Shown here: in pieces, positions 11,501 through 60,866 of the stretch | Numbering within the stretch: the stretch's first letter is position 1 | Layout: every line of letters starts with the position of its first letter | From: Tubulanus polymorphus | Lineage: Eukaryota; Animalia; Nemertea | NCBI RefSeq assembly: GCF_964204645.1 | Contig: NC_134030.1 | Span: 19,924,210 to 19,988,209, forward strand | Direction of reading: 5' to 3' | DNA length: 64,000 nucleotides | Translations under genes and position numbers: made by a program | Notes under the pieces: generated by a model | The model's input: the letters and a program-made list of their open reading frames with translations, nothing else | Told to the model about the DNA's origin: nothing | The model's database searches: none

Positions 11501-12589
11501 AGAAATCTGGATCTAACCGAAAATTCTGAAGTCATCTCCGTACAAAGAAACGTTTTTGAAAGTCTTACATTATTGAGTTCTTTGGCTTCTGACGCGTACA
11601 AATTTTGTTGCATGGTTCCGAATGTTGACCGGTGTCTCCCGGAAGCCGACCAATTTTCATCTTGTTCCGACCTTATGGGTAACACTGTTCTTAGAGCAAT
11701 CATTTGGGCGATCGCTTCATTCAGCTTTTTTGCCAACATCATCGTAATTTTACTTCGCGTTCAAGCGTTACGCATTTCATCCTCTGAATCACGTTACATA
11801 TCCTCTGATATCCTAATCATTAATATTGCCACCTGCGATTTTCTCATGTCAATTTATCTTTTTCTGATCGCTGGAGCCGATTACGTCTATAAAGGTGTTT
11901 ATTTCCTCAATTCTGAAATGTGGACAGATAGTTCACTGTGTCGACTCGCTGGGATTTTAGTAACTCTTTCGTGCGAAGGGTCTTTGCTTTTTCTCCTGAT
12001 TCTAACCCGTCAAAGATACTCGAATATCGTCGATCCATTTTCTGGAAGCCCAATTATATCATCGACATATGTGTTCGGTATTTGCTGTATATGCTGGATC
12101 ATTTTGGGCAACATTTCAATGCTACCGTTGTCGTCATCTTCTTATTTCGGACATAACTTTTACGGCACAACTGGTGTTTGTTTACCAATGAATTTACTAT
12201 CCATCGATGTCCACGCCTGGCAATATTCATTCGCTATTTTTGCCGTGTTTAACTCGGTCGTACTTGCTACAATAATGATGACGTATGCACAGATGTATAG
12301 ACTCGTATCTGGAAGCAGGTCCGGCTCGGGTAGAGCAGATCCTACCGAATTGGTTCTGGCGCGTAGGAGTTTAGTGATAAATCTGTGTAATTTATTTTGC
12401 TGGTTACCGATAATTATCGTTCAGTTTTGCGCTGTATTCCGAGTAGAAATACCGAATCAAGTGGCGGCTTGGTTGGCGGTACTTTTCCTACCGATTAACT
12501 CGTCACTGAATCCACTTCTTTACACCATCCTCACTATTGATGTTAAATCTATTCGGGCCAGAAATAAACGCGTTTTGAAAACTCGCTGA
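5521..12589 (+). pseudogene. GRL101-like: Copy 1 CUB-CTL-LDLa-LRR-7TM receptor; +1 frameshift before the LRRs (truncated ectodomain or pseudogene)
   Basis: Exons 5521-6759, 7155-8495, 9358-12589 (GTGAGT/TTTTGTAG, GTAATT/AACAG, all phase 0). Exon 3 is 3232 nt versus 3231 in intact copies. Frameshift at ~10936-10945, stop at 10954-10956. Confidence 0.88.
8754..9333. mobile_element. piggyBac-like non-autonomous element (580 bp) in intron 2 of copy 1
   Basis: TIRs CCCTTTCACGACC / GGTCGTGAAAGGT. 4-bp duplication TGAA at 8750-8753 and 9334-9337. The empty site caaTGAAactg is present in other copies. Confidence 0.8.
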
Positions 12590-16343: not shown

Positions 16344-19300
16344 ATGAAAATGGTTTCGGTTCATTTTGTCGTGTTGATGCTGTTCGGTATGGATCGACTG
16401 AGAGCGCTGTTTATAGCGTCGCTGATCGTCTGGCGAGTTAACATCGCACACGCTGATCTGTCTGACTCTGTGACGGTTTGTTCGTCTTGTAACAACACTT
16501 GGTACCCCGTCGATTCTACGTCCGGTTACATTGTTTCACCGAATTACCCGTCGTTAACGCGCGGTGTTGAATGTCGTTGGTTCGTCAACAGCTCTTTACC
16601 GGGAACTTTCAATATCAAACTATACTACGACATCGAGCCGTCGATATTCTGTAGTGATAACTACCTTCTCGTCGGTGAGTCCGATAACAGATTCTGCGGT
16701 GAAGGAAAATACGAAATCCACTGTAACGATTCGATCTCATTGCTGTTTAGAAGTAACGTCGATGGTTCGCGGGGTAGTCGGGTTTATATCACATATCGTT
16801 TAGAACGGAACAATTTGAAATTAATTCACACCTGCGCAAAATACGGTTTAAAAATCAACAAATTACCAACATCGATAGGATACAAGTTTGCTTTGTTGGT
16901 ATGGCAATGTAAATTGTATTTAGAATGGATCGGGATCCCGGATGGGTTTGCTATGAATTTCACGTTTTCGCTGATAAAATTCCAATTATTTCCCGGCACC
17001 GATCCAGCGACAACTGTTCAAATTCATGACGGATGGAACAGCAGTGAACTTATTGCTGTAATACCAGAACAAACCGGACATCCACCTTCATCATTCTATA
17101 CTAAAACTAACAAAGCTATGATCAGTTTGCTACTTGGGCGAAACGTATTTACATCACAATTATCAGTTCAAGTGTATAGAATATCAGATTGGAACGTCTC
17201 TAATCCGTTAATCCAAATCTCTAATAACGAGTCTGGAGTGCTCATTCCTGGTGACAACAGTTTACACGTAATAACTCGATCAAAACACTTACACTGCTGG
17301 TCTATCACAGTGCAGGTGTTACAGTACGTCGTCTTCAACTGGACACGTGATCTCAGCACATCCGGTGACGTCATTGGTGTATATAAACTAGAAGGGTTAC
17401 GCGTTGTAGAAACCGATATTTTACTCGGTTACAACTACCTGGAATCACTGAGTGTTAAATCTTACGGCTTTCTCGTCATACTGTGCGATTTAATAAGACC
17501 AGGTGTTTTACAGTCGAATGTGAAAATTGAATTTGAATTGAAATCTATTTCCATAAAAGACGCACGAGTGGATAAACACTTGGTGAGTATTGTGTGTTTT
17601 GATTTTAAGTTTAGGATTTTACCATGTGTGGATCTCTATTACAAGGATTCATGCGTAGGGTTTTCCCGTTGTGTTCCGAAAATAAATTGAACGTCTTCGA
17701 AGAAGTTACGTGCACTTTTTCTTGGAGATCCAGATACTATAACTGCATGTGTAAGCGATTATTGGGATAATTTAAAAGAAATTTCATTTTAGCAAATCTT
17801 AAAACACGAATTGCTGCACCTAACAGAATCATTAACGGACATAGATTTGAATATGTTGTTATGTCATTAATACTTAAAAAAAAATTGCTGATTTCTTATA
17901 TTTTGTAGATATCTGGCTACAGTTACAAATTACTTCCTCGATTTCTGTTCCCGACGACAAAGAAGACACCATTTTCGTATCGCATAAATACATTAGAATC
18001 TAAACGGAAAGTTGATATCTATGAGTATAGATTTAAACTAACAGTTTTATCAGAGACCTGCGAGAGAGCTGGATTTTATATATATGATGGTGGTAATTTT
18101 ACAGCTAGACGCTATGGTCCGTATTGTCCTGGTCTTTGGTACGGTCGTAACGTCGTCAGTCTGATTACATCAGGAGGACCGGTTACTGTAGTAGCATACG
18201 CTTATAATGATGTACCTAAATCTGGGTATCTCAGATTCGCCCCTACTGATTGTGACGGTTATGTTCTGCAGGAAGGAGAAAATCAGATCAATACGACGTC
18301 ACACTGCCTCACGATTACACCTGAAAACCGGCGCCTTCCTTTAGAAAATATTTATATAATATCAGAACACGAATATCAAATTTACACATGTTTCCGTGGT
18401 TTAAATTCGTGTCCTGATGTTACTTTTACAACAACTCAATTACTGAATAACAGTCTCTTATTGAATCATCTGATGATAAAAGGAAGTAGTTATTGGTTCT
18501 GGAGGAGTTCCCTGATGATTGTACTACGACGTAAATGTTTGGTGTTGATGATCTATCAAGATTCCCCGGTACTCACTTCTGATAGTTTTGCATACATCCC
18601 GCCGATGCGAGAAAAATGTGGAGTCGCACAATCACCGAACTATTCTGGGTATGTTTCACAGCGCAGTAAATCAAGTTTGTACTACTCATTTCATTACGAC
18701 AAACATTTGAATTATTACATCAGATTCCTTTTCAAATTTATGGGACACGCCTCGTGCAGCCCTTCTAGTAGTAATGCCGTTCGAGATCAATTATTACTGG
18801 CACAGATTATTTCGAAACCTGGTAATCATGAAACCGGCTTTAGACAGCGTCGCCACGAGAATAAAATATGTGAAAATAACGCTGTACCTGGACTTGTATT
18901 ATACAGTCTACTCGGGTATGACGTTTACTTTGAAGCGAAAAACCATATCCCAATATTCAAAATTCAATACACTTTAGAACAATCGCCTTCACAAACACAT
19001 CTGAATAATGACTGCGGATTAGATTTTCTAGATTCAGGTGTTTCGTGTATCAGATACATCAAACATGAACGTCTGAATCGGGAGAACGCTGAAATTTACT
19101 GTCAACAGAAATACGGAGGACATCTTCTCAGTATCAACTCTGAACAGGAAATGATTGCTGTAAAAAAACTGTTCGCTACGAAACTTCTGCAGGAGGCGTA
19201 TTCACAAGCGGCGCTGATTGTGATGATTGGATTGAAATGGCAGGTAATTTCAAATTATCGTTATGAACATGTTTACCAACATTCATTTAGTTTTGAACAT

Positions 19301-22300
19301 GATTTTGAATTTGTTACGAATTCATTCATTCTCTACTAAAAGTTTAGAATCTTTCATATTAATTGAAACAGATTTCTATTAGTCAACGTGTAAAATATAA
19401 CATAATCTTAATTTGATAAACTCAATTCGGACGCTTGATATAAGTTAGATATCCAAAAGCTAATCGTCATGAACACTTCTAAAACCATTTCGATCAATGA
19501 AACTGAATTTATTTTGAATAGGGTGATGGTTATTACACGTGAACTGATGGAAAACCATTGAGCTACACAGAGTGGTTTAAACCTACTATAATAAACGAAA
19601 CGATACCAGAAGTTATTCAAGGATTGATATCTCCTCTACGAAAACAACCGATAAATGACGTCAATATGCCGTGTACGGCGATGATTCTGAATAATCCACG
19701 AGGATCAGCGAACTGGGTTCGATTCCCGTGTCAAATAGAGGAGACTCGAACAACTTTCATTTGTGAGAAAGAAAAAGATAACTCTTCATCGACTGAAAAT
19801 CACAAATTACCTGTTGCAGAAGAAAACTATACTTATTATTCGGGGATATTGGAATCAGATAACTCCACGTGTTTTAAGGGATGGATTCGTATAGAAGGAC
19901 ATTGCTATCAGATACTTACAGCTTGGGATACTCACAGATTGTCGATTCCGGAAGCTGAGGAAATGTGTCTTAAAATCGGTGGTGAATTAGGTATAGTATC
20001 CATTGATGTTATAATTCAGCATTTGATTCAAATATTTCATTATGCACATCAATATGGTGCTATACTAGCAAAGGCTACGGATAGTGAATTTCTTGCTCTG
20101 AATCCAGTTCTGACAAGAGATGAAATAACATATATAAAAACGGTGAAATGGTCAGTGACTGCCTTTGATAATGTCACAGATGTCGCGCATTCAGTGCTAT
20201 GTTCCTACAATGTAACTGGTGAAGAGTTGGCTTCTATAAGTAGTTGTCAATCGTGGCAATTTGAATGTAACGATCAAAGATGTATCAGCGATCATCGCGT
20301 ATGTGATACCAGAAACGACTGTCAACACGGTGAAGATGAACTCGATTGTTCAGATTCAAACTGGCGCAGTCAGTTCCACTGTACTGATGGAAGAGTTATA
20401 TCAGTGAGTAATTTGTGTGATTTTGTACGCGATTGCGCTGACGGATCAGATGAGAACTCGTGCTATCATACTTCATGTTCCTCTGAACAGTTTAAGTGTA
20501 GCAATGGACAATGTGTGGGTAAATATAAACGATGTGATGGACTGGTTGATTGTAAAGATAAATCTGATGAGATCGGCTGCTCTTTAGATGAATGTAACGG
20601 GTTTTTGTGTGTAAATGGTGAATGTATCAGTTCTCTGTTGTATCGGGATGGTGTTGTTGATTGTGCTGGTAGCCTTGAAGAAGATGAGATTGTCACCAAC
20701 ATGACAGTTACACCAAAGATTCACTGTACTACAGAGAACTACTGTACGACTAATTTCACAAACCTATGTAAGAAATCCGATGAACAAAGATGTTCTTTCG
20801 ATTCTCCTCATTGTTATTCTAGACGTCACAGGTGTATTTTAGAAAGGATGCCGATTGGTTACCCGGTATGTAGAAGGCTCGAACATATACAAGGTTGTAC
20901 TGATTTCAAATGTCCAGCTGGTGCTGCAAAATGTCCAGCATCTTACTGTATACCGATGGGACAGGTGTGCGATGGTCGATCCGATTGTCCTAACTCAGAA
21001 GATGAGCGAAACTGCAAGACTTTGTCATGTCCTGGCATGTTAAAGTGTGGCCAGGAAAACCGATGCATACCTCAATCTGAAGTTTGTGATGGTGTCGTCA
21101 ATAAACCATTTTACAGTTGCTAGCCGCCATTTTGTTAGGGTACTTTTGTCCTGTATTGTTGGGTCATTAGTTTCTCCTTTTTAAAAACTATTTGTGATGC
21201 GTGTTTTATCATATCTCATCTGTCCCTCGATAGATTTTGACAGTTTTTGCAACATTCAAACCGTGTGAATCTCTAGTTTTCAGTTATGCAAAGATCATTT
21301 TTCAAATTTGCAACAATGCGACATGAGAGCGATATAGAAATCGGTGGTCGGTTTTTGCTGCACGCATAAAAATCCAGGGTACTGAAATTTGAAGTTCATT
21401 ATTTTCAGAAATTATTTTCTAAAAAATCCAAACATTTCGAGAACTGTGCGCATAAACGCCCCCTTTCAAGTGAACTTTAAAATCTTAAGATATCTTGCCT
21501 AGTTTTTATCCTATGGCTCTTTAACTACAGCGCGTGTATTGTCATTCCGGGTTTCGGCGCTGTTTTCTATGCGTGTATTTCAGTATATCGGTGTTATTTT
21601 TTTCATTTTTACTACACTTGTCTCCACGGAAAATGGTTTTAATTGTTGGTACGAGTATCAGCTTTAAATATTACGTCATTTATGCAATATTCAGAGACAT
21701 GAGAGATTTTTGGGTTTTAAAGATTTTTCTCACGATTCAGCAGCAGAGACTGAGCGGCATTTTGATCACGCGCCCATTCGAAGTTACACGCGGGAAGAGA
21801 ATATATAGGCCTATATTGAGATGGAAGAAGAAAACAAATATAACACTCAAAATCGAGTATGATGACCATTTAATTCAGTAGTCCATTAATCAATGTACAC
21901 TATCCACTGAAATTAGATGGATGGAGAAGTGGTCAAAAAGCTGGACATATGGGGGGATATTCAGCTACTTTCTATGAATACTTTCTATAAAGTACACACA
22001 AGATTGATTAGATCGGGGAAAAAAATATAAGAAAGCGTTTTCTTGTTTTGGTGGTGAAATATCAAGTATCAAGTCTGAATGGCAGACACAGGTGATTAAA
22101 AGTAAAAAGTGACATCTACCATCACCAAAAACGCAAGAAGTGTGTGGATTGCATTTACAACAAAATAGTGATATTTGGGGTTTTCTTGGGTGCATGTACG
22201 TAAGCCTCGGCCTGCAGTAAAAGCGGCTACCATTACAGGCATTACGAACTAGCGCCGTTAAAAGAGAACGGAATGGAGTATTAATGACGTAATATTTAAA

Positions 22301-24497
22301 CCTGATACTCGTACCAACAATTAAAACCATTTTCCGTGGAAACAAGTGAAGTAAGAATGAAAAAATAACACCCATATACTGAAATACACGCATAGAAAAC
22401 AGCGCCGAAACCCGGAATGACAATACACGCGCTGCAGTTAAAGAGCCATAGAATAAAAACTAGGCAAGATTTCTTAAAATTTTAAAGTTCACTTGAAAGG
22501 GGGCGTGTATGCGCACAGTTCTTGAAATGTTTGGATTTTTTAGAATGTTATTTCTGGAAATAATGAACTTCAAAGTTCAGTACCCAGGATTTTTATGCGC
22601 GCGGCAAAAACTGACCACCGATTTTTATATCGCTCTCATGTCGCATTGTTGCAAATTTGAAAAATGATCATTGCATAACTGAAAACTAGAGATTCACACG
22701 GTTTAAATGTTGCTAAAACTGTCAAAATCTATCCGGGGACAGATGAGATATGATAAAACACGCATCACAAATAGTTTCTAAAAAGTAGAAAATAATGACC
22801 CAACAATACAGGACAAAAGTACCCTAACAAAATGGCGGCTAGCAACTGTAAAATGGTTTATTGTAACCATACCACTGATGACGAAGCGTTCTGTGACGTC
22901 ATATGTCCAAAGGACTGTAAATGTCAAGGTCATTTGATAGATTGCGATCATGCTGGTTTCGTAGAAATTACTGATCTTTTCTCGGCATCAACTCGAGTTC
23001 TGATTTTATCAAGAAACCAAGTTGTATTCAATGAGTCAACATTTTCTTCGTACCTCTATTTACATTTCCTTAATATTTCACGTAACAATTTGTCTTATAT
23101 TGTTCCAAACGCGTTGTCAAACCTGCATAATCTACATACATTAGATCTTACCTATAACCGCATAATATCACTTTCCGAGAATACATTCGCCGGTTTGTAT
23201 AGTTTGAAAATGCTTTTGATTTTTGGAAATCCAGTGAGATATTTAGAAGAAGCCAGTTTTCAAGGTTTAAAGTCATTAAGCGATCTCGATCTTCACGGAC
23301 TTTCCTTGTCGTTACTCGGTGGAAATGTGTTCAGTGGTTTATCAGCTTTAGAGTCGTTAAATGTCAGCAGTAACGTGATCAGTTATATTTCACCAAATGC
23401 GTTCTCCGGATTAACAAAACTAAGAAATCTGGATCTAACCAAAAATTCTGAAGTCATATCCGTACAAAGAAACGTTTTTGACAGTCTTACATTATTGAGT
23501 TCTTTGGCTTCTGACGCGTACAAATTTTGTTGCATGGTTCCGAATGTTGACCAGTGTCTCCCGGAAGCCGACCAATTTTCATCTTGTTCCGACCTGATGG
23601 GTAACACTGTTCTTAGAGCAATCATTTGGGCGATCGCTTCATTCAGCTTTTTTGCCAACATCATCGTAATTTTACTTCGCGTTCAAGCTTTACGCATTTC
23701 ATCCTCTGAATCACGTAACATATCCTCCGATATCCTAATCATTAATATTGCCACCTGCGATTTTCTCATGTCAATTTATCTGTTTCTGATCGCTGGAGCC
23801 GATTACGTCTATAAAGATGTTTATTTCCTCAATTATGAAATGTGGACAGATAGTTCACTGTGTCGACTCGCTGGGATTTTAGTAACTCTTTCGTGCGAAG
23901 GGTCTTTGCTTTTTCTCCTGATTCTAACCCGTCAAAGATACTCGAATATCGTCGATCCATTTTCTGGAAGCCCAATTATATCATCGACATATGTGTCCGG
24001 TATTTGCTGTATATGCTGGATCATTTTGGGCAACATTTCAATGCTACCGTTGTCGTCATCTTCTTATTTCGGACATAACTTTTACGGCACAACCTATGAA
24101 TTTACTATCCATCGATGTCCACGCCTGGCAATATTCATTCGCTATTTTTGCCGTGTTTAACTCGGTCGTACTTGCTACAATAATGATGACGTATGCACAG
24201 ATGTATAGACTCGTATCTGGAAGCAGGTCCGGCTCGGGTAGAGCTGATCCTACCGAATTGGTTCTGGCGCGTAGGAGTTTAGTGATAAATATGTGTAATT
24301 TATTTTGCTGGTTACCGATGATTATCGTTCAGTTTTGCGCTGTATTGCGAGTAGAAATACCGAACCAAGTGGCGGCTTGGTTGGCGGTACTTTTCCTACC
24401 GATCAACTCGTCACTGAATCCACTTCTTTACACCATCCTCACTATTGATGTTAAATCTATTCGAGCCAGAAATAAACGCGTTTTGAAAACTCGCTGA
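16344..24497 (+). pseudogene. GRL101-like: Copy 2 receptor; exons 1-2 open, exon 3 disrupted three times
   Basis: Exons 16344-17582, 17909-19243 (open when read by hand), 19522-24497. TGG>TGA at 19540-19542, TE at 21103-22859, and a 14-bp deletion (TGGTGTTTGTTTAC) at 24093/24094. Confidence 0.92.
21103..22859. mobile_element. Non-autonomous DNA transposon, 1757 bp, ~580-bp TIRs, AT target duplication (ISL2EU/PIF-Harbinger-group-like, tentative)
   Basis: Starts AAACCATTTTACAGTTGCTAGCCGCCATTTTG and ends with its reverse complement. Arms are ~21103-21680 and ~22283-22859. AT at 21101-21102 and 22860-22861; the empty site gtcgtcaATtgt is in copies 3-5. No transposase ORF seen. Confidence 0.92.
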
Positions 24498-26061: not shown

Positions 26062-26248
26062 TTTTTTTAACACCCTGGCCCGCTAAGCGCCACGCTAGAA
26101 GCGGGTTCGATGTTTCTTTTTCCCAATACCCACATCAGAGAAGAACCTCCGACCAAGAAACTCTGCCGCCTCCAGGGTTTGAACCCATGAACCCTGGATT
26201 GATGAGAGCAGTGTCAGGCGGCTTATACCAATCGGCCACTGCGCCTCT
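26062..26248 (-). mobile_element. tRNA-derived SINE copy
   Basis: Paralog of 3331-3516. Confidence 0.65.
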
Positions 26249-28233: not shown

Positions 28234-29472
28234 ATGAAAATGGTTTCGGTTCATTTTGTCGTGTTGATGCTGTTCGGTATGGATCGACTGAGAGCGCTGT
28301 TTATAGCGTCGCTGATCGTCTGGCGAGTTAACATCGCACACGCTGATCTGTCTGACTCTGTGACGGTCAGGTCGTCTTGTAATAACACTTGGTACCCCGT
28401 CGATTCTACGTCCGGTTACATCGTTTCACCGAATTACCCGTCGTTAACGCGCGGTGTTGAATGTCGTTGGTTCGTCAACAGCTCTTTACCGGGAACTTTC
28501 ATCATCAAACTATACTACGACATCGAGCCGTCGATATTCTGTAGTGATAACTACCTTCTCGTCGGTGAGTCCGATAACAAATTCTGCGGTGAAGGAAAAC
28601 ATGAAATCCGCCGTAACGATTCGATCTCGTTGATGTTTAGAAGTAACGTCGATAGTGCGCGGGGTAGTCGGGTTTATATCATATATCGTTTGGAACGGAA
28701 CAATTTGAAATTAATTCACACCTGCGCAAAATACCATTTAAAAATCAACAAATTAACAACATCGATAGGATACAAGTTTGCTATGTTTCTAAAGCGATGT
28801 AAATTGCATTTAGAATGGATCGGGATCCCGGATGGTTTTGCTATGAATTTCACGTTTTCGCAGATAAAATTCGAATTATATCCCGGCACTGATCCAGCGA
28901 CAACTGTTCAAATTCATGACGGATGGAACAGCAGTGAACTTATTGCTGTAATACCAGAACAAAGTGGGCATCCACCTTCATCCTTTTATAGTAAGACAAA
29001 CAAAGCTATGATCAGTTTCCTACTTGGGCGAAACGAACTTACATCACAACTATCAGTTCAGGTGTATAGAATATCTGATTGGAACGTCTCTAATCCGTTA
29101 ATTCAAATCCCTAATAACGAGTCTGGAGTGCTCATCCCTGATGACAACAGTTTACACGTAATAACTCGATCAAAAAACTTACACTGCTGGTCTATCACAG
29201 TGCAGGTGTTACAGTACGTCGTCTTTAACTGGACCCGTGATCTCAGCACATCCGGTGACGTCATTGGTGTATATAAACTAGAAGGGTTACGCGTTGTAGG
29301 AACTGATATTTTACTCGGTTACAACCACCTGGAATCACTGAGTGTTAAATCTGAAGGCTTTCTCGTCATACTGTGCGTTTTAATAGAACCAGGTGTTTTA
29401 CAATCAAATGTGAATATTGAATTTGAAGTGAAATCTATTTCCATAAAAGACGCACGAGTGGATAAACCCTGG
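28234..29472 (+). CDS. Copy 3 exon 1: signal peptide + CUB/CUB-like domains
   Basis: ORF 28216-29574; donor GTGAGT at 29473. Confidence 0.85.
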
Positions 29473-32400
29473 GTGAGTATTGTGCGTTTTAATTTTAAGT
29501 TTAGGATTTTATTATGTGTGAATTTCTATTATAAGGTTTCATGCGTAGAGTTTTTGTTTTTGTTTTTGTTCTGAGAATAAAATGAAAGTCTTCGAAGCCA
29601 ACACGAGAAGTTACGTGCACTTTTTCATGGAGATCCAGATACTATAACTGTATGTGTAAACGATTATTGGGATGATTTAGGGTGGGTTTGTTTCAACTAA
29701 AATATTTTAGTGGGAAATTTGGATTTTCCACCTGAAGAAGAAATTTCATTTTAGCAAATCTTAAAACACGAATTGCTGCACGTGACAAAATCATTAATCG
29801 GAATAGATTTGAAAATGTTGCTATGTTATTAATACTTAAAAAACTAATGCTGATTTGTTATATTTTGTAGATATATGGTAACAGATACAGTTGGCCTGCT
29901 CGAAGTCTGTTCCCGATGACAAAGAAGACAACATTATCGTATCGCATAAATACATTTGAATATAAACGGAAAGTTGATATCTATGAGTATAGATTCAAAC
30001 TGACAGTTTTATCAGAGACGTGCGAGAGAGCTGGATTTTATATATATGATGGTGGTAATTTTACAGCTAGACGCTATGGTCCGTATTGTCCTGGTTTACA
30101 CTACAGTCGTAACGTCGTCAGTCTGATTACATCAGGAGGACCGGTTACTGTAGTAGCATACGCTTATAACTGGCATAAAAACTTAATTGTTAATGGGGCG
30201 TCATATCTATTTTTCGCCCCTACTGATTGTGACGGGTATGTTCTGCAGGAAGGAGAAAATCAGATCAATATGACGTCACACTGCCTCACGATTACACCTG
30301 AAAACCGGCGCCTTCCTTTAGAAAATATTTATATATTATCAGAATACGAATATCAAATTTACACATGTGTCCGTAGTTCAAATTATTCGTGTCCTCATGT
30401 TACTCTTACAACTCAATTACTGAATAACAGTCTCTTATTGAATCATCTGATGATAAAAGGAAGTAGTTATAGGTTCTGGAGTAATTCACTGATGATAGTA
30501 CTACGACGTAAATGTTTGGTGTTGATGATCTATCAAGATTCCCCGGTACTTTCCTCTAATCAAATTGCATACATCCCGCCGAAGCGAGAAAAATGTGGAG
30601 TCGCACAATCACCGAACTATCCTGGATATGATCAACAACGCCGTAAATCAAGTTTGTACTACTCATTTCATTACGACAAACATTTGAATTATTACATTAG
30701 ATTCCTTTTCAAATTTATGGGACACGCCTCGTGCAGCCCTTCTAGTAGTTATACTGTTCGAGATCCGTTATTACTGGTACAGACTATTTTGAAACCCGGT
30801 AGTGACATCATCCTTATTTGGGGGCTGCGTCGCCACGAGACTAAAATATGTGAAAATAACGCTGTACCTGGACTTGTATTGTACAGTCTACTCGGGTTTG
30901 ACCTTTACTTTGAAGCGAAAAACTATATCCCTTTATTTCGAATTCAATACACTTTAGAACAATCGCCTTCACAAACACATCGAAATAATGACTGCGGATC
31001 AGATTTTCTAGATTCAGGTGTTTCGTGTATCAGATACATCAAACATGAACGTCTGAATTGGGAGAAGGCTGAAATTTACTGTCAACAGAAATACGGTGGA
31101 CATCTTCTCAGTATCAACTCTGAACAGGAAATGATTGCTGTAAAAAAACTGTTCGCTACGAAACTTCTGCAGGAGGCGTATTCACAGGCGGCGCTGATTG
31201 TGATGATTGGATTGAAATGGCAGGTAATTTCAAAGTATCGTTATAAACATGTTTACCAACATTCATTTAGTTTCGAACATGATTTTGAATTTGTTACGAA
31301 TTCATTCATTCTCTACTAAAAGCCTAGAATATTTCATATTGATTGAAACAGATTTCTATTAGTCAACGTGTAAAATGTAAAATGATCTTAATTTGATAAA
31401 CTCAATTCAGTCGCTTGATATAAGTTAGATATCCTAAAGCTAATCGTCATGAACACTTCTAAAACCATTGCGATGAATGAAACTGAATTTATTTTGAACA
31501 GAATGATGGTTATTACACGTGGACTGATGGGAAACCATTGAGCTACACAGAGTGGTTTAAACCTGCTATGATAAACGAAACTATACCAGAAGTTATTCAA
31601 GGATTGATATCTCCTCTACGAAAACAACCGATAAATGACGTCAATATGCCGTGTACGGCGATGATACTGAATAATCCACGAGGTTCAGCGAACTGGGTTC
31701 GATTCCCGTGTCAAATCGAGGAGACTCGAACAACTTTCATTTGTGAAAAAGACAACGATAACTCCTCATCGACTAAAAATCACAAATTACCTGTTGCAGA
31801 AGAAAACTATACTTATTATTCGGGGATATTGGAATCAGATAACTCCACGTGTTTTAAGGGATGGATTGGTATAGAAGGATATTGCTATCAGATACTTACA
31901 GCCTGGGATACTCACAGATTGTCGATTCCGGAAGCTGAGGAAATGTGTCAAACAATTGGTGGTGAAATAGGTATAGTATCCAATGATGTTATAATTCAGC
32001 ATTTGATTCAAATATTTCATTATGAACATCAATATGGTGCTGTACTAGCAAAGGCTACGGAAAGTGAATTTCTTGCTCTGGATCCAGTTTTGACCAGAGA
32101 TGAAATAACATATAAAAAAACGGTGAAATGGTCAGTGACTGTCTTTGATAATGTCACAGATGTAGCGCATTCAGTGCTATGTTCCTACAATGCAACTGGT
32201 GAAGAGTTGGCTTCTATAAGTGGTTGTAAATCGTGGCAATTTGAATGTAACGATCACAGATGTATCAGCGATCATCGTGTATGTGATACCAGAAACGACT
32301 GTCAACACGGTGATGATGAACTCGATTGTTCGAAATCAATCTTACAGAGTCAGTTACACTGTACCGATGGAGAAGTTATATCTGTTAGTAATTTGTGCGA

Positions 32401-34732
32401 TTTTGTACGAGATTGCGCTGACGGATCAGATGAGAACTCGTGCTATCATACTTCATGTTCCTCTGAACAGTTTAAGTGTAGCAATGGACAATGCGTGGGT
32501 AAATATAATCAATGTGATGGACTGGTTGATTGTAAAGATAAATCTGATGAGATCGGCTGCTCTTCGGATGAATGTAACGGGTTTCTGTGTGTAAATGGTG
32601 AATGTATCAGTTCTCTGTTGTATCGGGATGGTGTTGTAGATTGTGCTGGTAGCCTCGAAGAAGATGAGATTGTCGTCAACATAACAGTTACACCAAAGAT
32701 TAACTGTACTACAGAGAACTACTGTACGACTAATTTCACAAACTTATGTAAGAAATCCGATGAACAAAGATGTTCTTTCGATTCTCCTCACTGTTATTCT
32801 AGACGTCACAGATGTATTTTAGAAAGGATGCCGATTGGTTACCCGGTATGTAGAAGGCTCGAACATATACAAAGTTGTACTGATTTCAAATGTCCAGCTG
32901 GTGCTGCAAAATGTCCAGCATCTTACTGTATACCGATGGGACAGGTGTGCGATGGTCGATCCGATTGTCCTAACTCAGAAGATGAGCGAAACTGCAGGAC
33001 TTTGTCATGTCCTGGCATGTTTAAGTGTGGCCAAGAAAACCGATGCATACCTCAATCTGAAGTTTGTGATGGTGTCGTCAATTGTAAACATACCACTGAT
33101 GACGAAGCTTTCTGTGACGTCATATGTCCAAAGGAATGTAAATGTCAAGGTCATTTGATTGATTGCGATCATGCTGATTTCGAAGAAATTACTGATCTTT
33201 TCTCGGCATCAACTCGAGTTCTGATTTTGTCAAGAAACCAGGTTGTATTCAATGAGTCAACATTTTCTTCGTACCTCTATTTACATTTCCTTGATATTTC
33301 ACGTAACAATTTGTCTTATATTGTTCCAAACGCGTTCTCAAACCTGCATAATCTACATACATTAGATCTTACCTATAACCGCATAATATCATTTTCTGAG
33401 AATACATTCGCCGGTTTGTATAGTTTGAAAAAACTTTTGTTTTTTGGAAATCCAGTGAGATATTTAGAAGAAGGCAGTTTTCATGGTTTAAAGTCATTGA
33501 GCGATCTCGATCTTCACGGACTTTCCTTGTCGTTACTCGGTGGAAATGTGTTCAGTGGTTTATCCGCTTTAGAGTCGTTAAATATCAGCAGTAACGTGAT
33601 CAAATATATTTCACCAAATGCGTTCGCCGGATTAACAAAACTAAGAAATCTGGATCTAACCAAAAATTCTGAAGTCATATCCGTACAAAGAAACGTTTTT
33701 GACAGTCTTACATTATTGAGTTCTTTGGCTTCTGACGCGTACAAATTTTGTTGCATGGTTCCGAATGTTGACCAGTGTCTCCCGGAAGCCGACCAATTTT
33801 CATCTTGTTCCGACCTGATGGGTAACACTGTTCTTAGAGCAATCATTTGGGCGATCGCTTCATTCAGCTTTTTTGCCAACATCATCGTAATTTCACTTCG
33901 CGTTCAAGCGTTACGCATTTCATCCTCTGAATCACGTAACACATCCTCTGATATCCTAATCATTAATATTGCCACCTGCGATTTTCTCATGTCAATTTAT
34001 CTTTTTCTGATCGCTGGAGCCGATTACGTCTATAAAAGTGTTTATTTCCTCAATTCTGAAAGGTGGACAGATAGTTCACTGTGTCGACTCGCTGGGATTT
34101 TAGTAACTCTTTCGTGCGAAGGGTCTTTGCTTTTTCTCCTGATTCTAACCCGTCAAAGATACTCGAATATCGTCGATCCATTTTCTGGAAGCCCAATTAT
34201 ATCATCGACATATGTGTCCGGTATTTGCTGTATATGCTGGATCATTTTGGGCAACATTTCAATGCTACCGCTGTCGTCATCTTCTTATTTCGGACATAAC
34301 TTTTACGGCACAACTGGTGTTTGTTTACCTATGAATTTACTATCCATCGATGTCCACGCCTGGCAATATTCATTCGCTATATTTGCCGTGTTTAACTCGG
34401 TCGTACTTGCTACAATAATGATGACGTATGCACAGATGTATAGACTCGTATCTGGAAGCAGGTCCGGCTCGGGTAGAGCTGATCCTACCGAATTGGTTCT
34501 GGCACGTAGGAGTTTAGTGATAAATCTGTGTAATTTATTTTGCTGGTTACCGATAATTATCGTTCAGTTTTGCGCTGTATTGCGAGTAGAAATACCGAAC
34601 CAAGTGGCGGCTTGGTTGGCGGTACTTTTCCTACCGATTAACTCGTCACTGAATCCACTTCTTTACACCATCCTCACTATTGATGTTAAATCTATTTGGG
34701 CCAGAAATAAACGCGTTTTGAAAACTCGCTGA
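28234..34732 (+). CDS. GRL101-like: Copy 3, intact GRL101-like LGR (signal peptide-CUB-CTL-LDLa-LRR-7TM), ~1940 aa
   Basis: Exons 28234-29472, 29871-31223, 31502-34732 total 5823 nt and are open. CUB SGYIVSPNYP...CRW; CTL IGLKWQ|NDGYYTWTDG across intron 2; LDLa CDxxxDCxDxSDE; LRRs; hinge KFCC...FSSCSDLM; TM6 CWLP; TM7 NPLLY. The start may instead be a downstream ATG (MDRLRALFIASLIVWRVNIAHA). Confidence 0.9.
29871..31223 (+). CDS. Copy 3 exon 2: variable CUB-like region + first half of C-type lectin-like domain
   Basis: Acceptor TATTTTGTAG ends at 29870, in frame with ORF 29916; donor GTAATT at 31224. Confidence 0.88.
31502..34732 (+). CDS. Copy 3 exon 3: CTL end, second CTL-like domain, LDLa x~7, LRRs, 7TM
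   Basis: Acceptor AACAG ends at 31501, in frame with the 1064-aa ORF. Confidence 0.92.
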   Translation, partial: NDGYYTWTDGKPLSYTEWFKPAMINETIPEVIQGLISPLRKQPINDVNMPCTAMILNNPRGSANWVRFPCQIEETRTTFICEKDNDNSSSTKNHKLPVAEENYTYYSGILESDNSTCFKGWIGIEGYCYQILTAWDTHRLSIPEAEEMCQTIGGEIGIVSNDVIIQHLIQIFHYEHQYGAVLAKATESEFLALDPVLTRDEITYKKTVKWSVTVFDNVTDVAHSVLCSYNATGEELASISGCKSWQFECNDHRCISDHRVCDTRNDCQHGDDELDCSKSILQSQLHCTDGEVISVSNLCDFVRDCADGSDENSCYHTSCSSEQFKCSNGQCVGKYNQCDGLVDCKDKSDEIGCSSDECNGFLCVNGECISSLLYRDGVVDCAGSLEEDEIVVNITVTPKINCTTENYCTTNFTNLCKKSDEQRCSFDSPHCYSRRHRCILERMPIGYPVCRRLEHIQSCTDFKCPAGAAKCPASYCIPMGQVCDGRSDCPNSEDERNCRTLSCPGMFKCGQENRCIPQSEVCDGVVNCKHTTDDEAFCDVICPKECKCQGHLIDCDHADFEEITDLFSASTRVLILSRNQVVFNESTFSSYLYLHFLDISRNNLSYIVPNAFSNLHNLHTLDLTYNRIISFSENTFAGLYSLKKLLFFGNPVRYLEEGSFHGLKSLSDLDLHGLSLSLLGGNVFSGLSALESLNISSNVIKYISPNAFAGLTKLRNLDLTKNSEVISVQRNVFDSLTLLSSLASDAYKFCCMVPNVDQCLPEADQFSSCSDLMGNTVLRAIIWAIASFSFFANIIVISLRVQALRISSSESRNTSSDILIINIATCDFLMSIYLFLIAGADYVYKSVYFLNSERWTDSSLCRLAGILVTLSCEGSLLFLLILTRQRYSNIVDPFSGSPIISSTYVSGICCICWIILGNISMLPLSSSSYFGHNFYGTTGVCLPMNLLSIDVHAWQYSFAIFAVFNSVVLATIMMTYAQMYRLVSGSRSGSGRADPTELVLARRSLVINLCNLFCWLPIIIVQFCAVLRVEIPNQVAAWLAVLFLPINSSLNPLLYTILTIDVKSIWARNKRVLKTR

Positions 34733-41460: not shown

Positions 41461-42687
41461 ATGAAAATGGTTTCGGTTCATTTTGTTGTGTTGATGCAGT
41501 TCGGTATGGATCGACTGAGAGCGCTGTTTATAGCGTCGCTGATCGTCTGGCGAGTTAACATCGCACACGCTGATCTGTCTGACTCTGTGACGGTCAGTTC
41601 GTCTTGTAACAACACTTGGTACCCCGTCGATTCTACGTCCGGTTACATCGTTTCACCGAATTACCCGTCGTTAACGCGCGGTGTTGAATGTCGTTGGTTC
41701 GCCAACAGCTCTTTACCGGGGACTTTCAACATCAAACTATACTACGACATCGAGCCGTCGATATTCTGTAATGATAACTACCTTCTCGTCGGTGAGTCCG
41801 ATAACAGATTCTGCGGTGAAGGAAAACATGAGATCCGCCGTAACGATTCGATCTCGTTGATGTTTAGAAGTAACGTCGATGGTGCGTGGGGTAGTCGGGT
41901 TTATATCACATATCGTTTAGAACGGAACAATTTGAAATTAATTCACACCTGCGCAAAATACAACGAATTACCAACATCGATAGGATACAAGTTTGCTATG
42001 TTGGTAAAGCAATGTAAATTGTATTTGGAATGGATCGGGATCCCGGATGGCTTTGCTATGAATTTCACGTTTTCGGATATAAAATTCGAATTACACCCCG
42101 GCACTGATCCAGAGAAAACTGTTCAAATTCATGACGGATGGAACAGCAGTGAACTTATTGCTGTAATACCTGAACAAAGCGGGCATCCACCTTCATCCTT
42201 TTATACTAAGACAAACAAAGCTATGATCAGTTTCCTACGTGTGCGAAACGTACTTACATCACAACTATCAGTTCAGATCTATAGAATCTCTGAATGGAAC
42301 GTCTCTAATCCGTTAATTCAAATCTCTAATAACGAGTCTGGGGTGCTCATTCCTGATGACAACAGTTTACACGTAATAACTCGATCAAAACACTTACACT
42401 GCTGGTCTATCACAGTGCAGGTGTTACAGTACGTCGTCTTCAACTGGGCACGTGATCTCAGCACATCCGGCGACGTCATTGGTGTATATAAACTAGAAGG
42501 GTTACGCGTTGTAGGAACTGATATTTTACTCGGTTACAACTACCTGGAATCACTGAGTGTTAAATCTGACGGCTTTCTCGTCATACTGTGCGTTTTAATA
42601 AGACAAGGTGTTTTACCGTCGAATGTGAAAATTGAATTTGAAGTGAAATCTATTTCCATAAAAGACGTACGAGTGGATAAACCCTTG
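41461..42687 (+). CDS. Copy 4 exon 1 (12-bp in-frame deletion versus other copies)
   Basis: ORF 41443-42750; donor GTGAGT at 42688. Confidence 0.85.
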
Positions 42688-45600
42688 GTGAGTATTGTGC
42701 GTTTTAATTTTAAGTTTATGATTTTATTGTGTGTGGATCTCTGTTATTAGGTTTCATCCGTAGAGTTTATGTTTGTGTTCTGAGAATAAAGTGAAAGTCT
42801 TCGAAGCCAACACGAGAAGTTACGCGCACTTTTTCTTGGAGATCCAGATACTATAACTGCATGTTTAAACGATTATTGGGATGATTTAGGGTGGTTTTTT
42901 TCAACGAAAATACTTTATTGGGAAATTTGGATTTTTCCACCTGAAGAAGATATTTCATTTTAGCAAATCTTAAAACGTGGCAAAATCATAACTCGAGATA
43001 GATTTGAAAATGCTTTTATGTTATTAATACTTAATAAAACGAATGCTGATTTGTTATATTTTGTAGATATCTGGTAACAGAAACAGCTACCGCTTGCCTG
43101 CTCAAAGATTGTTCCCGACGACAAAGAAGACAACATTATCGTATCGCATAAATACATTAGAATTTAAACAGAAAGTTGATATCTATGATGATGGATTGAG
43201 ATTAGCAGTTTTATCAGAGACGTGCGAGAGAGCTGGATTTTATATATATGATGGTGGTAATTTTACAGCTAGACGCTATGGTCCGTATTGTCCTGGTTAT
43301 GAATACAGTCGTAACGTCGTCAGTCTGATTACATCAGGAGGACAGGTTACTGTAGTAGGATACGCTTATAATGAACCTAAATCTGGGTCTCTCGGATTCA
43401 ATCCTACTGACTGTGACGGGTATGTTTTACAGGAAGGTGAAAATCAGATCAATATGACGTCACACTGCCTCACGATTACACCTGAAAACCGGCGCCTTCA
43501 TTTAGAAAATATTTATATATTATCAGAACACGAATATCAAATTTACACTTGTTCCCGTGGTTCAAATTCGTGTCCTGATGTTACTTTTACAACTCAATTA
43601 CTGAATAACAGTCTCTTATTGAATCATCTGATGATAAAAGGAAATAGTTATAGGTTCTGGAGAAGTTCAATGATGATTGTACTACGACGTAAATGTTTGG
43701 TGTTGATGATCTATCAAGATTCCCCGGTAGTTACTGCTAGTAGTTTTGCATACGTCCCGCCGATGCGAGAAAAATGTGGAGTCGCACAATCACCGAACTA
43801 TCCTCGATATTTTACACAACGCGGCAAATCTTTGTACTACTCATTTCATTACGACAAACATTTGAATTATTACATCAGATTCCTTTTCAAATTTATGGGA
43901 CACGCCTCGTGCAGCCCTTCTAGTAGTAATGCTGTTCGAGACCTGTTATTACTGGTACAGAGTATTTTTAAACCCGGTAGTGTTTTACTCCTTGTGGGGC
44001 TGCGTCGCCACGAGACTAAAATATGTGAAAATAACGCAGTACCGGGACTTGTATTGTACAGTCTACTCGGGTATGACGTTTACTTTGAAGCGAATAACTA
44101 TATCCCTTTATTTCAAATTCAATACACTTTACAACAATCGCCTTCACAAACACATCGAAATAATGACTGCGGATCAGATTTTCTAGATTCAGGTGTTTCG
44201 TGTATAAGATACATCAAACATGAACGTCTGAATTGGGAGAACGCTGAAATTTACTGTCAACAGAAATACGGTGGACATCTTCTCAGTATCAACTCTGAAC
44301 AGGAAATGATTGCTGGAAAAAAACTGTTCGCTACGAAACTTCTGCAGGAGGCGTATTCACAAGCGGCGCTGATTGTGATGATTGGATTGAAATGGCAGGT
44401 AATTTCAAATTATCGTTATGAACATGTTTACCAACATTCATTTAGTTTTGAACATGATTTTGAATTTGTTACGAATTCATTCATTCTCTACTAAAAGTTT
44501 AGAATCTTTCATATTAATTGAAACAGATTTCTATTAGTCAACGTGTAGAATATAACATAATCTTAATTTGATAAACTCAATTCAGACGCTTGATATAAGT
44601 TAGATATCCTAAAGCTAATCGCCATGAACACTTCTAAAACCATTTCGATCAATGAAACTGAATTTATTTTGAACAGGATGATGGTTATTACACGTGGACT
44701 GATGGAAAACCATTGAGCTACACAGAGTGGTTTAAACCTACTATAATAAACGAAACGATACCAGAAATTATTCAAGGATTGATATCTCCTCTACGAAAAC
44801 AACCGATAAATGACGTCAATATGCCGTGTACGGCGATGATACTGAATAATCCACGAGGATCAGCGAACTGGGTTCGATTCCCGTGTCAAATCGAGGAAAC
44901 TCGAACAACTTTCATTTGTGAGAAAGACAAAGATAACTCCTTATCTACTAACAATCACAAATTACCTGTTGTAGAAGAAAACTCTACTTATTATTCGGGG
45001 ATATTGAAATCAGTTAACTCCACGTGTTTAAAGGGATGGATTGGTATAGGAGGACATTGCTATCAGATACTTACAGCCTGGGATTCTCACAGATTGTCAA
45101 TTCGGGAAGCTGAGAAAATGTGTCTTAAAATCGGTGGTGAAATAGGTATAGTATCAAATGATGTTATAATTCAGCATTTGATTCAAATATTTCATTATGA
45201 ACATCAATATGGTGCTATACTGGCGAAGGCTACGGATAGTGAATTTCTTGCTCTGAATCCAGTTTTGACCAGAGATGAAATAACATATAAAAAAACGGTG
45301 AAATGGTCAGTGACTGCCTTTGATAATGTCACAGATGTAGCGCATTCAGTGCTATGTTCCTACAATGTAACTGGTGAAGAGTTGACTTCTATAAAAAGGT
45401 GTAAATCGTGGCAATTTGAATGTAACGATCAAAGATGTATCAGCGATCATCGCGTATGTGATACCAGAAACGACTGTCAACACGGTGAAGATGAACTCGA
45501 TTGTTCGGATTCAATCTTGCGCAGTCAGTTCCACTGTACTGATGAAAGAATTATATCAGTTAGTAATTTGTGTGATTTTGTACGAGATTGCGCAGACGGA

Positions 45601-47907
45601 TCAGATGAGAACTCGTGCTATCATACTTCATGTTCCTCTGAACAGTTTAAGTGTAGCAATGAACAATGTGTGGGTAAATATAATCGATGTGATGGACTGG
45701 TTGATTGTAAAGATAAATCTGATGAGATCGGCTGCTCTTCAGATGAATGTAACGGGTTTCTGTGTGTAAATGGTGAATGTATCAGTTCTCTGTTGTATCG
45801 GGATGGCGTTGTAGATTGTGCTGGTAGCCTCGAAGAAGATGAGATTGTCACCAACATAACAGTTACACCAAAGATTCACTGTACTACAGAGAACTACTGT
45901 ACGACTAGTTTCACAAACTTATGTAAGAAATCCGATGAACAAAGATGTTCTTTCGATTCTCCTCATTGTTATTCTAGACGTCACAGGTGCATTTTAGAAA
46001 GGATGTCGATTGGTTACCCGGTATGTAGAAGGCTCGAACATATACAAGGTTGTACTGATTTCAAATGTCCAGCTGGTGCTGCAAAATGTCCAGCATCTTA
46101 CTGTATACCGATGGGACAGGTGTGCGATGGTCGATCCGATTGTCCTAACTCAGAAGATGAGCGAAACTGCAAGACTTTGTCATGTCCTGGCATGTTTAAG
46201 TGTGGCCAAGAAAACCGATGCATACCTCAATCTGATATTTGTGATGGTGTCGTCAATTGTAAACATACCACCGATGACGAAGCGTTCTGTGACGTCATAT
46301 GTCCAAAGGACTGTAAATGTCAAGGTCATTTGATAGATTGCGATCATGCTGGTTTCGTAGAAATTACTGATCTTTTCTCGGCATCAACTCGAGTTCTGAT
46401 TTTGTCAAGAAACCAAGTTGTATTCAATGAGTCAACATTTTCTTCGTACCTCTATTTACATTTCCTTAATATTTCACGTAACAATTTGTCTTATATTGTT
46501 CCAAACGCGTTCTCAAACCTGCATAATCTACATACATTAGATCTTACCTATAACCACATAATATCATTTACCGAGAATACATTCGCCGGTTTGTATAGTT
46601 TGAAAAAACTTTTGTTTTTTGGAAATCCAGTGAGATATTTAAAAGAAGGCAGTTTTCATGGTTTAAAGTCATTGAGCGATCTCGATCTTCACGGACTTTC
46701 CTTGTCGTTACTCGGTGGAAATGTGTTCAGTGGTTTATCCGCTTTAGAGTCGTTAAATGTCAGCAGTAACGTGATCAAATATATTTCACCAAATGCGTTC
46801 GCCGGATTAACAAAACTAAGAAATCTGGATCTAACCAAAAATTCTGAAGTCATATCCGTACAAAGAAACGTTTTTGACAGTCTTACATTATTGAGTTCTT
46901 TGGCTTCTGACGCGTACAAATTTTGTTGCATGGTTCCGAATGTTGACCAGTGTCTCCCGGAAGCCGACCAATTTTCATCTTGTTCCGACCTGATGGGTAA
47001 CACTGTTCTTAGAGCAATCATTTGGGCGATCGCTTCATTCAGCTTTTTTGCCAACATAATCGTAATTTCACTCCGCGTTCAAGCGTTACGCATTTCATCC
47101 TCTGAATCACGTAACATATCCTCTGATATCCTAATCATTAATATTGCCACCTGCGATTTTCTCATGTCAATTTATCTTTTTCTGATCGCTGGAGCCGATT
47201 ACGTCTATAAAGGTGTTTATTTCCTCAATTCCGAAATGTGGACAGATAGTTCACTGTGTCGACTCGCTGGGATTTTAGTAACTCTTTCGTGCGAAGGGTC
47301 TTTGCTTTTTCTCCTGATTCTAACCCGTCAAAGATACTCGAATATCGTCGATCCATTTTCTGGAAGCCCAATTATATCATCGACATATGTGTTCGGTATT
47401 TGCTGTATATGCTGGATCATTTTGGGCAACATTTCAATGCTACCGTTGTCGTCATCTTCTTATTTCGGACATAACTTTTACGGCACAACTGGTGTTTGTT
47501 TACCAATGAATTTACTATCCATCGATGTCCACGCCTGGCAATATTCATTCGCTATTTTTGCCGTGTTTAACTCGGTCGTACTTGCTACAATAATGATGAC
47601 GTATGCACAGATGTATAGACTCGTATCTGGAAGCAGGTCCGGCTCGGGTAGAGCAGATCCTACCGAATTGGTTCTGGCGCGTAGGAGTTTAGTGATAAAT
47701 CTGTGTAATTTATTTTGCTGGTTACCGATAATTATCGTTCAGTTTTGCGCTGTATTCCGAGTAGAAATACCGAATCAAGTGGCGGCTTGGTTGGCGGTAC
47801 TTTTCCTACCGATCAACTCGTCACTGAATCCACTTCTTTACACCATCCTCACTATTGATATTAAATCTATTCGGGCCAGAAATAAACGCGTTTTGAAAAC
47901 TCGCTGA
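41461..47907 (+). CDS. GRL101-like: Copy 4, intact GRL101-like LGR, ~1929 aa
   Basis: Exons 41461-42687, 43067-44398, 44677-47907 total 5790 nt, all phase 0 and open, with the same domain order as copy 3. Confidence 0.9.
43067..44398 (+). CDS. Copy 4 exon 2
   Basis: Acceptor TTTTGTAG ends at 43066; donor GTAATT at 44399. Confidence 0.88.
44677..47907 (+). CDS. Copy 4 exon 3
   Basis: Acceptor AACAG ends at 44676, in frame with the 1064-aa ORF. Confidence 0.92.
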   Translation, partial: DDGYYTWTDGKPLSYTEWFKPTIINETIPEIIQGLISPLRKQPINDVNMPCTAMILNNPRGSANWVRFPCQIEETRTTFICEKDKDNSLSTNNHKLPVVEENSTYYSGILKSVNSTCLKGWIGIGGHCYQILTAWDSHRLSIREAEKMCLKIGGEIGIVSNDVIIQHLIQIFHYEHQYGAILAKATDSEFLALNPVLTRDEITYKKTVKWSVTAFDNVTDVAHSVLCSYNVTGEELTSIKRCKSWQFECNDQRCISDHRVCDTRNDCQHGEDELDCSDSILRSQFHCTDERIISVSNLCDFVRDCADGSDENSCYHTSCSSEQFKCSNEQCVGKYNRCDGLVDCKDKSDEIGCSSDECNGFLCVNGECISSLLYRDGVVDCAGSLEEDEIVTNITVTPKIHCTTENYCTTSFTNLCKKSDEQRCSFDSPHCYSRRHRCILERMSIGYPVCRRLEHIQGCTDFKCPAGAAKCPASYCIPMGQVCDGRSDCPNSEDERNCKTLSCPGMFKCGQENRCIPQSDICDGVVNCKHTTDDEAFCDVICPKDCKCQGHLIDCDHAGFVEITDLFSASTRVLILSRNQVVFNESTFSSYLYLHFLNISRNNLSYIVPNAFSNLHNLHTLDLTYNHIISFTENTFAGLYSLKKLLFFGNPVRYLKEGSFHGLKSLSDLDLHGLSLSLLGGNVFSGLSALESLNVSSNVIKYISPNAFAGLTKLRNLDLTKNSEVISVQRNVFDSLTLLSSLASDAYKFCCMVPNVDQCLPEADQFSSCSDLMGNTVLRAIIWAIASFSFFANIIVISLRVQALRISSSESRNISSDILIINIATCDFLMSIYLFLIAGADYVYKGVYFLNSEMWTDSSLCRLAGILVTLSCEGSLLFLLILTRQRYSNIVDPFSGSPIISSTYVFGICCICWIILGNISMLPLSSSSYFGHNFYGTTGVCLPMNLLSIDVHAWQYSFAIFAVFNSVVLATIMMTYAQMYRLVSGSRSGSGRADPTELVLARRSLVINLCNLFCWLPIIIVQFCAVFRVEIPNQVAAWLAVLFLPINSSLNPLLYTILTIDIKSIRARNKRVLKTR

Positions 47908-60300: not shown

Positions 60301-60866
60301 ATATCGTCGATCCATTTTCTGGAAGCCCAATTATATCATCGACATATGTGTCCGGTATTTGCTGTATATGCTGGATCATTTTGGGCAACATTTCAATGCT
60401 ACCGCTGTCGTCATCTTCTTATTTCGGACATAACTTTTACGGCACAACTGGTGTTTGTCTACCAATGAATTTACTATCCATCAATGTCCACGCCTGGCAA
60501 TATTCATTCGCTATATTTACCGTGTTTAACTCGGTCGTACTTGCTACAATAATGATGACGTATGCACAGATGTATAAACTCGTATCTGGAAGCAGGTCCG
60601 GCTCGGGTAGAGCTGATCCTACCGAATTGATTCTGGCACGTAGGAGTTTAGTGATAAATCTGTGTAATTTATTTTGCTGGTTACCGATAATTATCGTTCA
60701 GTTTTGCGCTGTATTCCGAGTCGAAATACCGAACCAAGTGGCGGCTTGGTTGGCGGTACTTTTCCTACCGATCAACTCGTCACTAAATCCACTTCTTTAC
60801 ACCATCCTCACTATTGATATTAAATCTATTCGGGCCAGAAATAAACGCGTTTTGAAAACTCGCTGA
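54341..60866 (+). pseudogene. GRL101-like: Copy 5 receptor; exons 1-2 open, early stop and compensating frameshifts in exon 3
   Basis: Exons 54341-55573, 55966-57309, 57636-60866. AAA>TAA at 57693-57695, -1 at ~58126, +1 in the A-run at ~58250. The first ATG is changed to ACG (54335). Confidence 0.82.

Follow-up and report, generated by a model that had tools for sequence, protein, structure and literature searches.

A tandem array of predicted GRL101-type receptor genes in the nemertean Tubulanus polymorphus carries, in one of its exons, five short hypervariable loops whose variants predate the array, are common to distant paralogs and have been reshuffled by recombination. The window, i.e. 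the whole stretch of 64,000 nucleotides to which the nucleotide positions below refer, covers part of this array. The interpretation that we favour, with a probability of roughly 0.55, is that the CUB surface loops of a GRL101-type receptor have been multiplied into a germline sensor repertoire of hundreds of genes.

Results

The repeat unit and the receptor gene

The window contains a 10-13 kb unit repeated head-to-tail in five full copies and one partial copy. Each unit includes a receptor gene of three exons, on the + strand and with phase 0 joins, and the joined exons of copy 3 would encode about 1,938 amino acids. The searches were run exon by exon and the splice model is a predicted one; a full-length Macrostomum protein whose domains come in the same order speaks for it, as do three ENA loci in which a phase-0 intron occupies the same position of the lectin domain. 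In copy 3, exon 1 (28234..29472, + strand, ATG at 28234 or 28240) encodes a hydrophobic leader, a CUB domain and further CUB-like modules. Exon 2 (29871..31223, + strand, 451 amino acids) encodes two domains termed CUB-A and CUB-C, separated by a domain B, and the first half of a C-type lectin domain. Exon 3 (31502..34732, + strand, 1,076 amino acids, intact) provides the rest of this lectin, a second lectin-like domain and LDLa repeats, followed downstream by LRRs, an LGR hinge and a rhodopsin-class 7TM domain.

Copy 4 (41467..47907, + strand, exon 2 at 43067-44398) is intact like copy 3, and exon 3 is broken in the three remaining copies of the window, which are also on the + strand. Copy 1 (5527..12589, exon 2 at 7155-8495) has a frameshift near 10940; copy 2 (16350..24497, exon 2 at 17909-19243) combines a stop at 19540 with a 1,759-nt insertion and the loss of 14 nt near 24092; in copy 5 (54341..60866, exon 2 at 55966-57309), the stop is at 57693 and is followed by a -1/+1 pair of frameshifts near 58127 and 58250. 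All the lesions in the window fall in exon 3, exons 1 and 2 being open throughout, and the broken copies cluster in the window, most of the other array copies being intact. Such copies might serve as donors of loops or yield secreted forms, keeping in mind that exon 3 represents 55% of the coding length and that the numbers are small. The insertion in exon 3 of copy 2 (21102-22860) terminates on both sides in inverted repeats of 582 nt (95%), with what looks like a 2-nt duplication of AT, and a related element has its end at 1-282, within the 7TM end of the copy that comes before. Another insertion, of 580 nt with short inverted ends (8754-9333), is present only in intron 2 of copy 1.

Receptor class and size of the family

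The Pfam searches identified a CUB domain in exon 1 (E 7e-6) and, in exon 3, 7tm_1 (E 5e-22), LRR_8 (E 3e-25) and Ldl_recept_a (E 3e-33, 6 stretches). The start of a Lectin_C domain at the end of exon 2 scored under the cut-off (E 0.002) because the domain is split by the intron, and the second lectin-like stretch gave a weak UL45 match, homologs of like layout passing the lectin cut-off. The combination by which GRL101-like receptors are recognized, namely a rhodopsin-class 7TM domain with LRRs and LDLa repeats and a C-type lectin before the LDLa (PMC12297450), is thus present. In a 7TM tree (IQ-TREE), the genes fall within the type C LGR clade (16 rows, 100/100), that is the RXFP/GRL101 branch and not the glycoprotein-hormone or LGR4-6 receptors, and they group at 90/97 with multi-CUB receptors of Macrostomum and of ENA contigs; the GRL101-like rows of this tree, from crustaceans and sea urchins, are not in a supported clade with the array genes. 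As judged from its sequence, the gene is a GRL101-type (type C2 LGR) receptor with CUB-type modules, two lectin modules, LDLa, LRR and 7TM.

The closest named protein is from Tubulanus polymorphus itself (68% identity), and other genes of the genome match this same protein at 92-96%. A homolog search with exon 2 alone gave no match at E<=0.001, the query being length-limited, so that this result is no evidence of absence. The ENA entries ERZ25072999 and ERZ25069853 comprise unannotated, animal-like contigs with a two-exon CUB-lectin-LDLa-LRR-7TM gene and the same intron in the lectin domain.

The receptor family amounts to hundreds of genes in the genome. Exon 2 had 94 scored matches among 367 candidates, spread over seven contigs or more, and of 505 candidates for the 7TM at least 128 were scored as matches, none of them under 80% identity; exon 2 identity across the family drops to 56-64%, against at least 80% for the 7TM. 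In the local tandem array, exon 2 occurs 21 times within 0.3 Mb, and for 17 of the 19 7TM matches of the array the reading frame is open over its full length. Part of the array recurs near-identically 232 kb away, and these duplicates were removed from the set. The block concerned, of several genes, is found at 19.81-19.87 Mb and at 20.05-20.11 Mb, and reflects either a segmental duplication of very recent date or a duplication made by the assembly.

Hypervariable patches in exon 2

The initial annotation, made on the window alone, described five hypervariable patches in exon 2 (HV1 to HV5), and all the 25 peptide variants that it quoted are present in the sequence. The lengths of exon 2 are multiples of 3, as it stated (1341, 1335, 1353, 1332 and 1344 nucleotides in copies 1-5, bounded by AG..GT, in phase 0 and without stops), and exon 2 is likewise open and a multiple of 3 in length in 30/30 fetched paralogs. 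The length variation preserves the frame, since, over 15 array copies, each of the 14 indel events of exon 2 adds or removes a multiple of 3 nucleotides, versus 7 of 33 in intron 1, which shows only that the genes stay functional. Among the five copies, the mean pairwise DNA difference is 0.29 for HV1, 0.23 for HV2, 0.44 for HV3, 0.27 for HV4 and 0.54 for HV5. The claim that the patches are more divergent than much of the spacer holds, these 23-54% comparing with a spacer mean of 0.041 and exceeding 99.5% of the alignable windows. The spacer set consists of 1,277 BLAST-alignable 30-nt windows, which are biased towards similarity, and 0.9% of them reach a difference of 0.2.

Other parts of this description had to be toned down. 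The framework, presented as near-identical, has about 94-95% DNA identity and is not near-invariant; the richness in Y, W and R corresponds to a true but modest enrichment (21.5% of loop versus 13.5% of framework residues). The five patches are all real but have company: exon 2 contains smaller variable spots at 29982-30002, 30471-30491 and 30549-30587, and exon 1 a sizeable variable patch at about 28720-28810 (residues ~162-190). In exon 1, other variable patches are seen at residues 208-215 and 260-270. The divergence of intron 1 is also raised (0.09-0.12). A 20-30% divergent patch upstream of exon 1 was discarded as an alignment artefact. Assembly noise was likewise rejected as a source of the patches, in view of the frame-keeping indels, the recurrence of the variants in distant clusters and the DNA contigs of three runs that cover the stretch.

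Position of the patches on CUB domains

The patches are split over two domains, HV1 to HV3 on CUB-A and HV4 and HV5 on CUB-C. CUB-A corresponds to residues 1-118 of exon 2 (hhalign 85.7%, neuropilin CUB at E 1e-5, Atlas 0.94). CUB-C corresponds to residues 239-364; its AlphaFold model has a pLDDT of 81 and a VIA search gave Z 9.6 with an rmsd of 2.2-2.4 Å over 97-98 residues, the top 37 rows being all CUB-containing, and this support is partly dependent on the generic CUBs that the alignment used for the model contained. A PDB sequence search with CUB-C was empty and Foldseek returned no match at E<=0.001. Both domains are assigned to the CUB fold, a beta-sandwich defined by its L5-L7 disulfide and strand pattern. 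The AlphaFold model of the whole exon 2 has a pLDDT of 29. Domain B (30228..30590, + strand) matched no Pfam or CUB profile, and its four Cys positions are kept in flatworm and other homologs.

All five patches are on the + strand. In an alignment with generic CUB domains, HV1 (29871..29921) opens CUB-A and includes the loop aligned to the SPxYP (L3) motif. HV2 (30093..30113) is assigned to loop L7 of CUB-A, right behind a conserved GPYC, and HV3 (30171..30218), which follows strand 9, to loop L9 and the last strand; HV3 occurs in long and short variants, both of which are present in paralogs outside the array. On CUB-C, HV4 (30615..30644) is placed on loop L3, immediately behind SP(N/E)YP, and HV5 (30801..30827) on loop L6, between the strands at model residues 62-69 and 81-88. 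The idea that the patches are disordered linkers was rejected, as they are loops between predicted strands of folded CUB domains.

Solved structures of tandem CUB domains have their odd-numbered loops in a radial position, on the ligand-binding side, and these loops are the more divergent ones (PMC8051872). The proposal that the patches are ligand-facing loops would agree with the predicted location of HV1-HV4 on odd-numbered loops, but not with that of HV5, since L6 is at the opposite end. By topology, HV1-3 gather at one end of CUB-A, and HV4 (L3) and HV5 (L6) occupy opposite ends of CUB-C. In the alignments, neither domain has the Ca2+-binding CUB ligand site: CUB-A is devoid of the strand-6 and L9 aspartates and CUB-C of the L5 glutamate and the L9 aspartate, so that neither conserves the acidic residues of the Ca2+ site (on L5, strand 6 and L9) through which classic CUB domains bind their ligands. 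The term "CDR-like" employed for the patches is acceptable as an analogy, but the fold is CUB and not Ig, and the variation is seen between genes that are each complete in the germline.

Recombination and age of the loop variants

A PHI-type test detects recombination within the array (P=0.0005), with a minimum of 46 events. The nearest paralog switches from segment to segment, and one HV5 variant occurs with three HV3 variants. For the framework, the difference is 5.4% within the array and 14-25% from the outside paralogs; for HV3, it is 40% inside the array, yet some HV3 variants are just 12-15% away from those of genes located at 0.2-1.1 Mb. HV5 and HV2 show the same age trend. Among the non-array paralogs, HV1, HV3, HV4 and HV5 rank in the 87-96th percentile of variability.

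Tests for positive selection

The selection tests were performed on 15 array and 8 outside sequences, with our own implementations, and the site models on the 15. With transition weighting, pS in the loops is 0.21-0.27 and pN 0.29-0.37, giving a pooled ratio of 1.3-1.45, with a bootstrap interval of 1.06-1.99. The framework (pS 0.065, pN 0.05) has a ratio of 0.72-0.79 and is weakly constrained; pN/pS of the 7TM is 0.33. The synonymous divergence of the loops is up 3-4 fold over that of the framework. The pooled ratio above 1 is expected, even without selection, of patches chosen for their amino-acid variability: when the five most variable windows are picked in a matched null, the mean ratio is 1.23-1.30, and the observed value of 1.48 has a P of 0.13-0.23. 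The codon models gave per-loop omegas of 1.2, 3.3, 1.3, 0.9 and 4.7 for HV1-HV5, with a weak excess for HV2 (uncorrected P 0.06) and HV5 (uncorrected P 0.03).

In the site models, M2a versus M1a on 14 segments with local trees yields an LR of 39.7 (range 40-42 for the M2a-type comparisons). The M2a-type LR is higher than in any of 44 null simulations in which the rates varied by block (maximum 27), but values of this size are usual in null simulations whose rates vary from site to site (median 48). When rate and omega were given classes of their own in a grid model, the LR came to 0.9-2.0; in 25 reference simulations with 16% of the sites at omega 3, the minimum LR was 1.4 and the median 12, and we read the observed grid LR as lying below those of all 25. 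The data thus argue against a sizeable omega-3 class, and a few selected sites are compatible with them. The site models do not sustain the claim of positive selection (dN/dS>1 in the patches) made in the initial annotation: the LR falls from 40-42 to 1-2 once the site rates vary, and the pooled ratio (1.3-1.5) is within its matched null. This result calls for caution, as a standard site model declares a strong positive selection (P about 1e-9) that is gone with site-rate variation.

These tests bear on an explanation in which the loops would form an antibody-like single binding face engaged in an ongoing arms race, with a dN/dS well above 1. The omegas of HV2 and HV5 on their own trees, the bootstrap interval, the LR that beats the block-rate null and the location of the top sites, mostly in loops, speak in its favour. 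We nevertheless judge it improbable, because the signal vanishes with site-level rate variation, the ascertainment-matched null yields the same pooled ratio, and HV5 and HV4 point to different ends.

The same data make a serious rival, although in our opinion a less likely one, of a neutral origin: loops that tolerate change and indels would become islands of divergence where the indel mismatch stops the conversion tracts and old differences last with no selection for diversity, in a family growing by birth and death. Such islands would account for a pS raised alongside pN with a ratio near 1, and the data are fitted by a null that has varying site rates but no positively selected class. Intron 1 is raised too, several copies are pseudogenes, and the odd-numbered CUB loops are generally more divergent (PMC8051872). 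Against this explanation, the spacer has more indels and yet almost no such islands (the 0.9% of windows mentioned above, subject to their alignment bias), the array copies of HV2 and HV4 are hypervariable although no indel falls inside them, the same loops vary deeper in the family, and every examined exon 2 is open.

A knottin-like peptide gene in each unit

Each unit also contains one intact two-exon gene for a knottin-like peptide, on the + strand (3080-3730, 13884-14559, 25786-26462, 39143-39818 and 51954-52628), some 1.8 kb before the start of the receptor gene. Its product consists of a 22-residue signal peptide and a 26-residue six-Cys peptide (C-x6-C-x5-CC-x3-C-x4-C), with weak Pfam matches to spider and cone-snail toxin families. 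There are 20 such genes in the array, and dispersed homologs elsewhere in the genome.

One could imagine that the peptide is the ligand of the receptor of its own unit, the pair forming a cassette for self or kin recognition (cf. plant S-loci) or for the sensing of the animal's own peptide. The alternation of the genes on the same strand and the five distinct mature peptides in five copies, with 8/8 changes non-synonymous, would suit such a pairing. It appears to us very improbable, as does its corollary that the loops track the peptide variants. The peptides differ by only 1-6 residues and the loop variants are far older; no such alternation with peptide genes is seen in the other receptor clusters, and the peptide homologs are scattered; the 8/8 count is not significant (P about 0.1). 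A co-duplicated neighbour of the receptor explains the pattern, and this is probably what the peptide gene is.

Discussion

The model we favour, a germline sensor repertoire built on CUB surface loops, combines the recombination of the array with the persistence of ancient loop variants. Recombination and gene conversion, as observed in the array, would homogenise the framework, the spacers and the signalling half of the receptor, while the discrete old variants of the loops would persist and enter new combinations, as is also observed. The loops would set the specificity for external macromolecular ligands, which may be microbial or come from parasites, prey or conspecifics. Selection would favour many different variants and not a fast point substitution; that it retains the variants is suggested by the rarity of such islands in the spacer and by the loop position of the patches. 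The binding would then be relayed via the shared LDLa-LRR-7TM module to a common G-protein output. The role of the repertoire could be either immune or chemosensory. In favour of the model we also count the 7TM pN/pS of 0.33 and the ties of snail GRL101 clusters to schistosome resistance (PMC12297450) and to tentacle expression (PMC6573481). We count against the model the absence of a dN/dS excess after the controls, the weakly constrained framework, the location of HV5 at the other end of its domain, the poorly kept Ca2+ site of both CUB domains and the broken copies.

Short variable patches on a conserved framework and old variants that are recombined also characterize the CDRs of immunoglobulins and T-cell receptors, MHC molecules, plant NLRs and the Sp185/333 family of sea urchins. 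The array differs by its CUB fold instead of Ig, by complete germline genes that give no sign of somatic rearrangement, and by the lack of a robust dN/dS>1, unlike MHC grooves and NLR LRRs. Tentatively, and with much less confidence than in the repertoire as such, one may go further and see in the array a GPCR-based germline-combinatorial repertoire, in which conversion-reshuffled CUB-loop variants are displayed on a fixed signalling module and serve the recognition of pathogens, of parasites or of self and nonself.

Several GRL101-type receptors described so far are related to this array. In Biomphalaria sudanica, SudRes2 is a 12-gene GRL101-like cluster located in a schistosome-resistance region (PMC12297450). 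It resembles the array by its tandem CTL-LDLa-LRR-7TM receptors, their copy-number and length variation and the recognition role proposed for them; the array has 21 genes instead of 12, with hundreds in the genome, and neither CUB modules nor a loop-level analysis are described for SudRes2 (PMC12297450). Moreover, SudRes2 has a genetic association with parasite resistance. The apple snails (ampullariids) possess 29-132 GRL101 genes, which result, as in the nemertean, from a lineage-specific tandem expansion (PMC6573481); their expression in tentacles and palps points to chemosensation. GRL101-like receptors are also expressed in sensory organs of a starfish and a triton (PMC6267866, PMC13403566), and nemerteans have large repertoires of class A GPCRs (PMC11886862).

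The GRL101 of Lymnaea, a type C2 LGR and a relative of the relaxin receptors, shares with the array genes the multiple LDLa repeats, the LRRs and the rhodopsin-class 7TM; it differs from them in being usually a single gene, for which the binding of an insulin-like peptide is proposed, and in having no CUB and lectin extension of ~1,100 amino acids (10.1101/2021.04.15.440029). The domain order of the array genes is found in Macrostomum lignano PAA57333.1 (2,163 amino acids), in the ENA genes and in Lytechinus XP_041486068.1, but their CUB region is just 17-25% identical to that of the array genes.

In conclusion, expansions of GRL101 have already been published in snails; our literature search found no paper on multi-CUB LGRs or their loop-level variation. 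GRL101-type receptors are orphans, and in the papers found no surface responsible for their specificity has been located. The array offers short, swappable candidate loops on receptors that are otherwise 95% identical, so that specificity would be directly testable by loop swaps.
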